A DNA stretch of 64,000 bases, taken from Oculina patagonica. Its lineage: Eukaryota. The DNA is taken from positions 44,702,001 through 44,766,000 of the forward strand of contig NC_135759.1 of assembly GCF_052425735.1 (NCBI RefSeq), read 5' to 3'. A program made the position numbers and the translations under genes. Shown one piece after another: positions 21,001 through 23,608 of the stretch; positions within the stretch are counted from its first letter, which is position 1; the number at the start of each line of letters is the position of its first letter. The notes under the pieces were generated by a model, which saw only the letters and a program-made list of their open reading frames with translations, was not told the DNA's origin and ran no database searches.

Positions 21001-23608
21001 CATCTTGAAATTTGTCCACCGTCTCGTATTGTCCAAACTGAGCTACCTGTGAGGCTGAGGGGCCGAAAAGAACCATTGCTGCTCGATTTTTACCTGGTGC
21101 TTTATCCAAAGTCGTCACTAATTTCTTGACTACTTCCTTTGCATCGTTGAATTCTGATTCAACACTGCCTGAAGAGTCCACGATAAATACCACATCCGTT
21201 GGACACGCACGAGTAACTGAAAAGTATGAAAGTTATAAGAACTTAAAATCAGTTTAACGCTTGTCAGGAGTCTTTAGTTTTAAATTCGGGAATTGGGTAA
21301 TATTTATTTACTACTAGAATAAAGCTAAGTGCTTCATTGGGAAACATAGTAACAATAAGGAATAGAATATTAAGAATTGAACTTGAATAGAATAAATTTG
21401 TAGAGCGCTCAACTCGGAGAGGAGCAGTGATAATAATAAATCAAAAGTAGGAAGATTTCAATTTATCGTTTTTTGCGACAACACTGTTTCGTGTGATCAA
21501 AGGATGACCACACTCATCAGGCAATATCAACGAATGACCGTTAGAATACATAAACTGGCAATAAAAGGCTAACTTAAGGTTGCTATGCGATATAAAAACA
21601 GTTGCTATGATATATAAAAACTATAGGGTTATAAAAAAACAGAAATTGCGTATACTAAAGATTGCGTTACTTAATCACAAACATTAAGAATTATATATAT
21701 CATGTAAAATTATAGTAACTTTAGTAACTTAAGTAAAAAAAAATTGGCATTTTTTTCAAGTTTATCATTTGTAATCCGTCTTAATCTTCGTCAGTCGAAA
21801 CCAACCTAATTTATTTTCGGGTTTTGTTATTCCTTTGGTGTTTTTCTATGTAGAAAACTGTTATTTCGAGGTTTCCTTCAATTTATCTAATCAGAAAAAA
21901 AAATGATTTGAAATACCGTGACATTTCCCCGCATTAAACTTGTTTAGTGTTGGAAACGTTCAAAACAAATTTTCATGACTTAATATGTGACACCAAACAA
22001 ACAATTCAAAGCGAAATTGTTCTTTCAGTGTGTGACCTTTTAGCATTGTACACTACTCACGATCTATATTAATCGAAATGGGACTTATCTTCACTAGTTT
22101 CAATCTTTTTCTTGTTTGTCCATCAGCCTACTTTTGCTGTGTTGCATCGACTATTTTCACAATCGAGGCTAAGACTTTTCTGGCATTTTCCCAATCGAAA
22201 CTAAGATTATAGGACAAATTGGACTGCAAAAAAGGAATTTGTAGCCGCCCTTACCCTGTCCTGGTCCAGGACCTTCTCTACCGAACCCTATACGCTAGTT
22301 GTTCTAGCTTCCCAGGGGAAAGCAAAGAAACAGTAACTTGAAAGAAAATCGACTTACTAGGGCATTTCTGTGCATTGCACGAAATAGTCTTTACAGCAGG
22401 TCCCCATCTGTTACAATTTCTTCCACCGTTAGATGGCGGGGGATTGGTGCAGGTTCTTTTTACTGTTTGTATCCCAACTCCACACGTCGCACTGCACTCA
22501 GACGCAGGAGACCAATCAGTGTACTTTCCGTCTATAGGAGCTAAGAAAGAAAGAAGAAAAAAATCAATTCATAGTCAACAACATCGTTTGAAATCACATC
22601 CACAGAATTGTCCATGCCCCTTTCCACGAAACTGTACATAATAGCGTTGCCCTAGCGTCTAAAGTAAGTGAACAATAACTTAGATTAGTAGAAACTCAGC
22701 TGTGTTCTTTTGGAAATCTGATTGGTTCTTCCACTGTTTTCTATTTTAACAATAGAGTGTTTCTGTCGAGGAACTATCGGCTGATTCCGCGGATTTGATG
22801 TTCTTAAAACAAATAGTAGCCCGAGAAGCGAAGCTTCGAGGATTGCATTTTAGAACATCTCAGGGAACAGACGATGTTCCTCCATTGTTCACACTAAATT
22901 TTCCCCGCGCACATAACGAGATCGTGAATTATTTTTACTTTTCAGAATAAAAAACTCAATTGAGAGCCGAAATTTAACAAACGAAACAAAACCAGACAAG
23001 AAACCCACGAAATGCAGTGAATTTGGTTGGTGTTTTTTGTCTGCAGGCACGCTTGTTTACAAAAAAAAGTCACGGGCGGGCACTATCGATCCGGGCATTT
23101 TTCTCGGGAGGGCACTATGGGCTGTTAGCATAACCACACTGACCTACTATTGGTAATCGCGCAATCTGATTGGCTACACAGGTGCCTACTATCGATCCGT
23201 AGAAGGCTCTCGGAGCGCGCGCGTAGTCTTCGCGAATTTTATCAATCAAAACCTTCAATAAATCAATCTAGCGATATCGAGTTTAATGATCGGTCAGTGG
23301 GTATGCAACAAAGAGGCCGCTCTCGGTTCTACCGGCTTTGATAGTGGCTCGGGGCCGCCCCCGCCAACTATCAGCCGGTAGAAACCTCGAGCTGCCGTCT
23401 AATTGTTAAATAGTGCCCTCCGGCGGAGGGCACTATCGCGTCACGTGTTCAATTTAAACCAATCAGAATCGGAGAAAATTTAGTGGTGAACTATAATCGC
23501 CGATAGAAAACAGTCGCGCGCGCGAGTAGCTTTTTAAGTGGTAAATTTTCTTAATTTTTATCTTCAAAGTGCACAATATTGTAGGTTTTGGACTACAATC
23601 CTTTAGAT

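Follow-up and report, generated by a model that had tools for sequence, protein, structure and literature searches.

The insert and its host intron

We analyzed a window of 64,000 nucleotides of the Oculina patagonica genome, in which a TSP1/VWA gene lies on the minus strand, with a TSP1 exon at 22540-22358 and a VWA exon beginning at 21216 (Pfam VWA, E 1.4e-27). The intron between these two exons holds an insert of 304 bp (21379-21682), enclosed by the sequence ATTAAGAATT at 21369-21378 and again at 21683-21692. The corresponding intron of the paralogous gene copy carries ATTAAGAATT a single time (45986-45995) and represents the empty site. The sequence-only reading of this DNA had described a 304-bp insert with a 10-bp target-site duplication, present in the first gene copy (copy 1) only and oriented in the sense direction of a host intron. 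This insert is real and is found in copy 1 only, with a duplication of 8-10 bp, because the letters AA are common to the end of the element and to the target. Since the host gene is on the minus strand, the hammerhead motif of the insert does lie in an intron in sense orientation, with the 3' splice site 162 bp downstream. The locus presents the following features:

21217-22357, minus strand: host intron holding the insert, between the TSP1 and VWA exons (from the exon positions)
21683-21692: target-site duplication, upstream copy in the sense of the element; ATTAAGAATT on the plus strand, with one copy at the empty site
21369-21378: target-site duplication, downstream copy in the sense of the element; repeat of ATTAAGAATT
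45986-45995: empty target site in the paralogous gene copy; ATTAAGAATT once, in the intron without insert
21379-21682, minus strand: 5'-truncated (dead-on-arrival) Penelope-like element (PLE), probably of the Hydra clade; last four codons, 3' UTR and tail only
21667-21681, minus strand: what remains of the PLE ORF, namely its final four codons and the stop, TTT GTG ATT AAG TAA (FVIK and stop); the 708-aa ORF at L032:3802-5928 ends in NFVIK and stop
21379-21427, minus strand: PLE 'tail', which duplicates, with divergence, the 5' UTR and first codons of the element itself (from local alignment)

The parent family in the genome

We identified at least 46 genomic matches to the 304-bp unit, with 92-95% identity over the whole aligned length, often arranged as direct or inverted pairs with a spacing of 0.07-6 kb. 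At least 30 other copies directly follow the stop codon of a 708-aa ORF encoding a putative reverse transcriptase (RT) and GIY-YIG endonuclease. Nearly all copies have the same 3' end of this ORF before them, and after them comes either AAGAAGT(TA)n or a (TACA)n form of this ending. One head-to-tail junction leads into the 5' UTR and the ATG, and the unit length is 2435-2456 bp. These copies establish the insert as the 3' end of a PLE, broken at the stop codon. The family is young and low in copy number in O. patagonica.

The 708-aa ORF presents the motifs RWK (residue 39), DKT rather than DKG (121), YRDD (351), CNCRKKDQC (CxCX5C; 568) and YVG (602), followed near its C-terminus by CNLC (CxxC; 665) and CPH (CxH; 694); it has no CCHH motif. 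A GIY-YIG domain was matched at residues 594-657 with a weak score below the Pfam cut-off (E 0.0095), and no RT domain was detected by Pfam (RVT_1), PDB sequence or PDB profile searches. The AlphaFold model of the protein (pLDDT 73.7) matches only reverse transcriptases, TERTs included (E 8e-6 to 1e-3). Taken together, the motifs and the predicted fold suggest that the ORF encodes both an RT and a GIY-YIG domain. Its homologues number more than 2,900 proteins of about 700 aa, many of them on unit-length contigs of 2.3-2.6 kb, and the best named ones are O. patagonica proteins.

Hydra-clade PLEs are characterized by RWK, DKT instead of DKG, a CxCX5C linker, an endonuclease without CCHH, and CxxC and CxH near the C-terminus; they are under 3 kb, target (TA)n, and have a canonical hammerhead in each of their families (Craig et al. 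2021, PMC8557442). The parent family of the insert resembles them in its size of ~2.45 kb, its single ORF of ~700 aa with a putative RT followed by a C-terminal GIY-YIG domain without CCHH, its RWK, DKT and CxCX5C motifs, its insertion at (TA)n, its tandem and inverted partial copies (pseudo-LTRs, or pLTRs), its canonical-type hammerhead and its cnidarian host. Compared with this published description, the motifs point to a Hydra-clade PLE. The family differs in being without a name in the literature cited here, and the window contains its last 304 bp only, at a target that is AT-rich and lacks a long (TA)n tract. The sequence-only reading had also proposed that an almost intact PLE elsewhere in the window supplied the mobilising enzyme. 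This element gave only a weak profile match to the parent ORF (hhalign E 2.3e-4, probability 44%); its relationship to the parent family is remote, and it cannot be counted as the source of the enzyme.

The copies fall into two classes according to their 3' end. The second class ends at about sense position 252/253 and comprises many copies from which the tail is absent. We aligned the tail with the 5' end of the element and obtained a local alignment score of 49, against 16.5 +/- 3.5 for shuffled sequences (maximum 34). Two 3'-end classes and an optional extension resembling the element's own 5' end are also known from work on internal RT initiation in PLEs (Frangieh et al. 2024, PMC11167929), and such an extension is as expected if reverse transcription starts inside the next unit of a tandem transcript. 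The extension found here is longer (~58 bp versus 30-40 bp) and is diverged instead of identical.

The sequence-only reading had taken the insert for a separate non-coding unit, namely a non-autonomous non-LTR retrozyme: a protein-free hammerhead unit mobilised in trans by a PLE and possibly giving rise to a circular RNA of ~300 nt. Its more general claim of a retro-insertion linked to PLEs agrees with the colinearity of the insert with the 3' end of the PLE ORF. The unit also shares with metazoan non-LTR retrozymes a low GC-content and a type I hammerhead, and both its ~300 bp size and its duplication of 8-10 bp fit such elements, whose target-site duplications exceed 4 bp (Cervera & de la Pena 2020, PMC7229834). 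Moreover, retrozymes are thought to derive from PLE pLTRs, as has been reported (bioRxiv 10.64898/2026.07.22.740005). Unlike retrozymes, the unit lacks tandem repetition and does not form a family of its own, since elsewhere it continues into the ORF; this colinearity holds for almost all copies, and the insert itself retains the last ORF codons and the stop. The search for genomic copies proposed by the sequence-only reading recovered the dispersed copies but no head-to-tail arrays of ~300-bp units among the 46-52 genomic matches listed, which are lower bounds. The 5' break points of the other solo copies are scattered (sense positions 2, 20, 97, 102, 150 and 155), as expected under random truncation. 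Another solo copy, L029, has a 5' break point that nearly coincides with that of the window copy; this favors the retrozyme reading and could hint at a preferred short form. Finally, no back-joint of a circular unit was observed in two contig sets and a few raw reads of the RNA-like runs described below. We therefore conclude from the copies that continue into the ORF, their (TA)n ends and their tandem or inverted pairing that the window copy is a truncated tail, and we regard a retrozyme as highly improbable.

Structure and conservation of the hammerhead

As had been claimed, the minus strand of the insert carries a complete type I hammerhead, with loops closing helices II and III and helix I left open, in which CUGAUGA, GAAA (21490-21487), a 3-bp helix III with a GUGU loop and a cleavage site at 21477/21476 can all be read. 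Helix II was given as 8 bp and is in fact 9 bp long, including one G.U pair. The parts of the motif are the following:

21466-21533, minus strand: type I hammerhead motif, with helix I formed by 21533-21521 and 21476-21466
21514-21520, minus strand: hammerhead core CUGAUGA (C3-A9) (sequence reading and structural descriptor)
21491-21513, minus strand: helix II, 9 bp, with G10.1-C11.1 at its base and loop UCCUU (folding and family comparison)
21478-21490, minus strand: GAA (21490-21488), then helix III and loop 3, ACAGUGUUGU (21487-21478) (folding and copy comparison)
21476-21477, minus strand: predicted scissile bond, C17 (21477) / G1.1 (21476) (sequence reading and descriptor scan)

Across the 64 kb, a structural descriptor identified hammerheads at three places, each on the minus strand: the one in the insert and two minimal ones (40827 and 37905) that belong to the window's own PLE. 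The sequence-only reading had set the insert's motif apart from PLE hammerheads. It is itself a PLE hammerhead, of the putative Hydra-clade family; its helix III of 3-4 bp does distinguish it from the minimal form at 40827 and 37905.

We also considered whether AT-rich intron DNA could have matched the hammerhead consensus by chance. The Rfam search suggested by the sequence-only reading returned no hammerhead model at the gathering score, and nothing of use at permissive cut-offs, for the window, a 101-nt slice or a family copy; Hammerhead_1 was absent, and only Hammerhead_3 was aligned, with 12.2 bits of the 48.5 needed (101-nt search). This weak alignment was rejected, as it implies a different, mismatched topology. 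The Rfam miss reflects a helix II that is atypically long and a helix III that is atypically short for those models. In addition, the minimum-energy fold of the window motif is not the native one, which lies 3.1 kcal/mol above the minimum in constrained folding, and the folding z-score is only -1.24. Against a chance match, the descriptor found nothing in 100 Markov-simulated windows, the motif is conserved in 52 genomic copies versus 0 for the reversed control, and the same motif occurs with compensatory changes at the same position of homologous elements from other hosts. These three lines of evidence refute a chance match, to which we attach a negligible probability.

Eight homologous elements of other hosts, with proteins 52-86% identical, also carry the hammerhead in their 3' UTR. 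The first four pairs of helices I, II and III are paired in 10/10 sequences; two to four pair types occur at six of the twelve positions, and the others are invariant. The catalytic core is likewise invariant in 10/10 family members, with C or A at H17. This conservation and covariation identify the hammerhead as the family's own 3'-UTR (pLTR) ribozyme.

Helix III and its loop are self-complementary at 8-10 of 9-10 positions in every sequence. The fourth pair of helix III (15.4-16.4) covaries across hosts, although a monomer hairpin that included it would be left with a loop of only 1-2 nt; the evidence therefore points to cleavage as a dimer. In agreement, the minimum-energy fold of the family dimer is a double hammerhead (-61.7 versus 2 x -26.6 kcal/mol), and the helix III self-duplex is predicted at -12.1 kcal/mol for the family and -4.4 kcal/mol for the window copy, versus 0.0 for the hairpin alone. 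The earlier expectation that this hammerhead folds as a monomer is consequently doubtful: its helix III hairpin has no predicted stability, and helix III is palindromic across the clade and covaries at 15.4-16.4. Dimeric action and weak activity in vitro are described for metazoan PLE hammerheads (Cervera & de la Pena 2014, PMC4209133). The family resembles these dimeric hammerheads in its type I motif within a terminal repeat, its long helix II, its invariant G10.1-C11.1 and its palindromic helix III and loop 3; it differs in having a helix III of 3-4 bp, not the 1-bp 'minimal' form, and no extra base between positions 9 and 10.1.

Origin of the window copy and its possible activity in the host transcript

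The window copy has diverged from its family. Relative to a copy beside an intact ORF, it presents eight substitutions, four of them within the hammerhead, and an additional 1-nt deletion in helix I (the U at position 1.5). In pairwise comparisons of element copies, it is 96.7% identical to the others (counting substitutions only), which are 98.6% identical among themselves. Of the changes relative to the family, five lie within the motif; they include a CG-to-UG replacement at the center of the palindrome and a new mismatch in helix I. In the window copy, helix I comprises 4 bp and an A.A mismatch, followed by 1 bp, then a small internal loop and a further 4-5 bp. The U at 21483 is a derived CpG-to-TpG change and the window variant is rare, with CAGCG in 49 of the 52 motif copies in the genome and CAGTG in three. 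That half of the eight substitutions lie in the motif gives no sign of constraint on the window hammerhead, and there is no conservation at the paralogous site, given that the paralogue has no insert and the motif carries five changes relative to the family.

RNA evidence came from two contig runs that behave like transcriptomes, neither of them on record as RNA, together with one read from a small-RNA run and 19 reads from a polyA run. Contigs matching the neighboring exon exactly show that copy 1 is expressed. The unique parts of the intron have zero depth in the RNA-like runs; the 304-bp unit is covered only by contigs with the family's variants, and transcripts of the family are present. 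No pile-up of ends was seen at 21477/21476 in these data, which are mostly assembled contigs with very few raw reads, so that a short-lived intron lies beyond their reach. The sole spliced joint across the intron (21209 to 22359) carries five foreign letters, and therefore comes from an allele or another paralogue and is no proof of correct splicing of copy 1. Nothing shows an effect of the insert on the host gene.

These data bear on whether the hammerhead of a truncated PLE tail might be active in the host transcript, through monomer folding or pairing in trans, and reduce or truncate the expression of this gene copy. The catalytic core, G10.1-C11.1, A15.1-U16.1 and C17 are intact in the window copy, as are the three helices, so activity of this copy is conceivable; the motif also lies in sense within an intron close to the 3' splice site, and abundant family transcripts could pair in trans with the intron copy. 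A single-copy hammerhead of a coral retrozyme reportedly cleaves efficiently during transcription (kobs about 0.8 per min), and the same study gives the helix III of invertebrate type I hammerheads as only 2 bp long (PMC7229834), hence the short helix III alone is no proof of inactivity. Retrozyme and PLE-tail sequences are furthermore depleted in frog introns (bioRxiv 10.64898/2026.07.22.740005), which suggests that such insertions can be harmful. On the other side, the palindrome and the covariation of helix III across the clade are those of a dimer, the window copy has a weakened helix III and an extra helix I mismatch, its motif lacks any sign of constraint, the paralogue does without the insert, and copy 1 is expressed with no ends at the cleavage site. 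PLE hammerheads are also weak or protein-dependent in vitro (PMC4209133, PMC11167929): in the green anole, the hammerhead of the Poseidon-type PLE PAc depends on the protein of the element, and its site shows no RNA-seq ends (PMC11167929). We consider an active tail of this kind unlikely on these grounds. A further point counted against it is that, as Fong et al. reportedly found in 2009 (NSMB), only fast ribozymes in introns disturb splicing.

The sense-strand hammerhead in an intron of a protein-coding gene recalls the conserved intronic hammerheads of amniotes, which have been cited as acting in mRNA biogenesis (PMC7229834). The amniote hammerheads are conserved at orthologous sites, whereas the window's is a recent, decaying insertion that is absent from the paralogue and under no apparent selection.

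With high confidence, we interpret the insert as the heavily 5'-truncated tail of an autonomous, ~2.45-kb Hydra-clade PLE, with the element's own 3'-UTR hammerhead. Truncation at the 5' end, with one terminal repeat retained, is described for most PLE insertions (bioRxiv 10.64898/2026.07.22.740005). Target-primed reverse transcription would have used an AT-rich nick and begun close to the 3' end of the element RNA, and synthesis would have halted, or been joined to the target, on reaching the ORF stop codon, which would leave 304 bp between target duplications of 8-10 bp. The hammerhead of the clade would act as a double hammerhead, in which two copies, provided by a tandem pLTR-ORF-pLTR transcript or a dimeric RNP, pair via the palindromic helix III. 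The window copy stands alone, without a partner in cis, and has drifted neutrally; its hammerhead would most likely cut the host pre-mRNA poorly or not at all and be removed with the intron. There is a very small chance that this lone hammerhead in the intron has kept its activity, either as a monomer or through helix III pairing with abundant transcripts of the parent family. If true, expression of the TSP1/VWA paralogue would be coupled to retrotransposon activity through a 'double hammerhead' formed in trans by transposon RNA and host pre-mRNA.

A 5'-truncated PLE tail with the element's hammerhead is expected retrotransposon debris and carries little weight as a discovery, and Hydra-clade PLEs with hammerheads are already known from corals. 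For annotation, a lone 'canonical' hammerhead in O. patagonica should be checked for continuity with a PLE ORF before it is named a retrozyme. For the family, the optional 3' tail, which repeats the element's 5' end in diverged form, fits the internal-initiation model derived from the biochemistry of the anole PLE. Finally, the covariation of pair 15.4-16.4 across hosts constitutes direct comparative evidence of a Hydra-clade hammerhead selected for action as a dimer.

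Insertion site and genomic copies

Two copies of ATTAAGAATT, at 21369-21378 and 21683-21692, enclose 304 bp. The third and sole other occurrence in the window (45986-45995) falls in the paralogous counterpart of the intron that holds the insert; there the flanks are alignable and the 304 bp are absent. The flanking repeat and the empty paralogous site show a real insert with a target-site duplication, both confined to copy 1, as a previous sequence-only reading had stated. The duplication is 8-10 bp long, the range arising because 'AA' is common to the element end and the target. 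The same reading had placed a hammerhead in the sense strand of a host intron, and this is borne out by the minus-strand gene and the exons on either side:

22540-22358, minus strand: TSP1 exon of the host gene, with a GTAAGT donor
from 21216, minus strand: VWA exon of the host gene, preceded by the acceptor ttttcag

The hammerhead motif is intronic and sense to the host gene, and the 3' splice site lies 162 bp downstream of it. Near gene copy 2, an ORF fragment of 231 aa (50633-51328, minus strand; RVT_1 match under the Pfam cut-off, E 2.6e-6) is probably another retroelement remnant.

Searching the O. patagonica genome with the insert yielded at least 46 matches of 92-95% identity, many of them paired, direct or inverted, 0.07-6 kb apart. 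We read the flanks of all copies after orienting them on the hammerhead strand. In almost all copies the sequence upstream is ...CCTTCTCAAGAAC|TTTGTGATTAAGTAA, where a long ORF ends (708 aa at 3802-5928 of L032, a family-copy locus on G000:C4 of this genome), and the window copy starts at the last four codons of that ORF (FVIK*). The 5' breaks of other solo copies fall at sense positions 2, 20, 97, 102, 150 and 155, a scatter expected from random 5' truncation. At two loci the 3' end runs into another copy's 5' UTR and ATG, forming head-to-tail tandems with a unit size of 2435-2456 bp. Family hammerheads also stand head-to-head, 40-115 bp apart, on three contigs (G000:C2:12581365-12581459, C6:31925169-31925274 and C8:19266826-19266997); these are inverted double insertions typical of Penelope-like elements (PLEs).

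The insert had been interpreted as a retrozyme, a free-standing non-coding unit. Neither of the two defining features of a retrozyme was found: almost every copy follows the ORF end rather than belonging to an independent non-coding family, and there are no tandem arrays of the 304-bp unit among the matches listed. We therefore consider a retrozyme highly improbable.

The parent element

The 708-aa ORF contains the following motifs, and CCHH is absent from it:

residue 39: RWK
residue 121: DKT
residue 351: YRDD
residue 568: CNCRKKDQC (CxCX5C)
residue 602: YVG
residue 665: CNLC
residue 694: CPH

RWK, DKT, CxCX5C and CxxC/CxH without CCHH characterize the 'Hydra' clade of C-terminal-EN PLEs (Craig et al. 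2021, PMC8557442). Members of this clade are shorter than 3 kb, target (TA)n, carry canonical hammerheads in all families and are hosted mainly by cnidarians, a stony coral among them (PMC8557442). The parent family shares this motif set, the lack of CCHH, the unit size below 3 kb and the (TA)n ends. Pfam returned only a weak GIY-YIG match on the parent ORF (E 0.0095) and did not find RVT_1, a miss consistent with the reported divergence of RT motifs in this clade. The fold predicted by AlphaFold from 14 homologues (pLDDT 73.7) matched only reverse transcriptases in the PDB (E 8e-6 to 1e-3), including TERT of Tribolium, Candida, Tetrahymena, yeast and human. Homologues of the ORF number more than 2,900 proteins of ~700 aa; they come from bivalves, bryozoans and marine metagenomes, and many are encoded on contigs of 2.3-2.6 kb.

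The family 3' end, ...CAAGTTCAAGAAGT, leads into (TA)n or (TACA)n; copies of a second class stop ~58 bp earlier, at ...TTATTAT(AT)n. This optional tail, of which the window holds 21379-21427, is a second, diverged version of the element's 5' UTR plus first codons (L032:3700-3835; score 49 against the 5' end, 16.5 +/- 3.5 for shuffles), in line with the internal-initiation model (Frangieh et al. 2024, PMC11167929).

On these observations, the insert is very probably the dead-on-arrival, 5'-truncated tail of a Hydra-clade PLE. PLE hammerheads, coral Hydra-clade PLEs, 5'-truncated single-repeat insertions (bioRxiv 10.64898/2026.07.22.740005) and the PLE 'tail' are already published.

The window's own PLE had been put forward as an available mobilising enzyme. 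Its ORF (38302-40728, minus strand) presents just remote similarity to the parent ORF, and this PLE is not the source of the 304-bp copy. That element also includes the ORF 40813-41463 (minus strand); its ORFs are RVT_1-positive and are flanked by two identical minimal hammerheads (37877-37905 and 40799-40827, minus strand, 2922 bp apart), forming a partial tandem with pseudo-LTRs. Each minimal hammerhead reads CCCUGAUGA-U-GCCG...CGGC-GAAAGCUU, with one additional base behind A9 and the palindrome AGCU replacing helix III.

Hammerhead architecture across the family

The insert carries a complete hammerhead on the minus strand, as previously described, except that helix II comprises 9 bp rather than 8:

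21520-21514, minus strand: core CUGAUGA
minus strand of the insert: helix II, 9 bp, loop UCCUU
21490-21487, minus strand: GAAA
21487-21478, minus strand: helix III and loop, ACAGUGUUGU (3-bp helix III, GUGU loop)
21477, minus strand: C17
minus strand: helix I, 4 bp, A.A mismatch, 1 bp, internal loop, 4-5 more pairs

A structural descriptor scan of the 64 kb gave three hammerheads, this one and the two of the window's own PLE, each on the minus strand, and gave none in 100 Markov simulations. A chance motif is excluded. Rfam, the search proposed earlier as a check, returned no usable hit for the motif at gathering or permissive thresholds.

We fetched homologous elements from other hosts (52-86% protein identity), and eight of them contain a 3'-UTR hammerhead. 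In a core-anchored alignment, positions 1-4 of helices I, II and III are paired in 10/10 sequences; 6/12 positions vary, with two to four pair types each, and the others are invariant. Some changes are fully compensatory, such as helix I GCAA/UUGC to UUAA/UUAA. Helix III and its loop vary among ACAGCGUUGU, ACAGUUCUGU, ACAGAGCUGU, ACAAAUUUGU, ACAGUACUGU, ACAACGUUGU and ACUUUAAGU, all self-complementary at 8-10 of their 9-10 positions. Covariation is present at pair 15.4-16.4 (GU, GC, AU, UA), although in a hairpin this pair would leave a loop of 1-2 nt, which is not formable. Selection for an intermolecular helix III is the simplest reading of the alignment, as in the 'double hammerhead' model put forward for hammerheads of metazoans and PLEs (PMC4209133). 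In agreement, ViennaRNA predicts a double-hammerhead fold for two family copies (-61.7 versus 2 x -26.6 kcal/mol) and no stability for the lone helix III hairpin. With this instability and the dimer-like covariation, the earlier expectation of folding as a monomer appears doubtful.

A poly(A)-signal-like hexamer immediately follows the cleavage site, within the 3' strand of helix I, in the family (L032:3657-3670) and in several homologues of other hosts (AAUAAA in L035, L036 and L040; AUUAAA in L039 and L045). The window copy lost it through a 1-nt deletion (GCAAUAAAACG to GCAAAAAACG). In an AU-rich helix I, this hexamer may be a coincidence.

Expression, host gene and probable decay of the window copy

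RNA evidence came from two contig runs that are RNA-like by behaviour and carry no record as RNA: depth is zero in unique intron parts, contigs are confined to the exon, and one exon contig continues beyond the stretch in the manner of a spliced transcript. Exact-match contigs represent the VWA exon in these runs, and the contigs covering the 304-bp unit all carry family variants. The family is transcribed and the window copy not visibly so. Neither run presented end accumulation at 21477/21476 or a back-joint in the unit, which is compatible with a short-lived intron whether cleaved or not. A spliced joint (21209/22359) links the TSP1 and VWA exons with five foreign letters, GGAAC; copy 1 has CGAGTAAC (21210-21217, plus strand) and copy 2 a longer stretch. 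Since GGAAC is unlike both, the contig seems to derive from a third allele or another paralogue that is expressed. Two short stretches beside the VWA exon and the insert, 20400-20600 and 21740-21940, reach summed depths of 150 to >2,800 with many variant contigs; they look like transcribed repeats of high abundance and may be MITE-like. The window also contains a tRNA-Thr(GGU) gene or tRNA-like sequence (15114-15189, minus strand; Rfam 41.4 bits, ARAGORN).

Fong et al. 2009 reportedly found that only fast intronic ribozymes disturb splicing, which argues against a measurable effect of this hammerhead on the host gene. Such an effect is very unlikely: although the core is intact and a single-copy coral retrozyme hammerhead is reported to cleave fast (PMC7229834), the dimer architecture and the derived changes of the window copy count against it, as do in vitro data in which PLE hammerheads were weakly active or assisted by protein (PMC4209133; PMC11167929).

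At up to one mismatch, the motif has at least 52 genomic occurrences and none in a reversed control. Loop 3 is CAGCG in 49 of the 52 listed and CAGTG in three, including the window copy; this CpG-to-TpG change weakens the self-duplex of helix III, which ViennaRNA puts at -4.4 kcal/mol against -12.1 for the family. Relative to the family, the window copy also has A for G at position 2.5 and a deleted U1.5, which together leave an A.A mismatch where the family has a G.U pair, as well as C for A in loop 2 and A for G in outer helix I. Four of its eight substitutions fall in the hammerhead. Counting substitutions only, it is 96.7% identical to the other copies, which are 98.6% identical among themselves, and the introns flanking the insert are 92% identical between gene copies 1 and 2. 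By these identities, the insertion is younger than the gene duplication and has drifted since. The window copy would thus hold a dimer-type hammerhead with no cis partner, probably in early decay.
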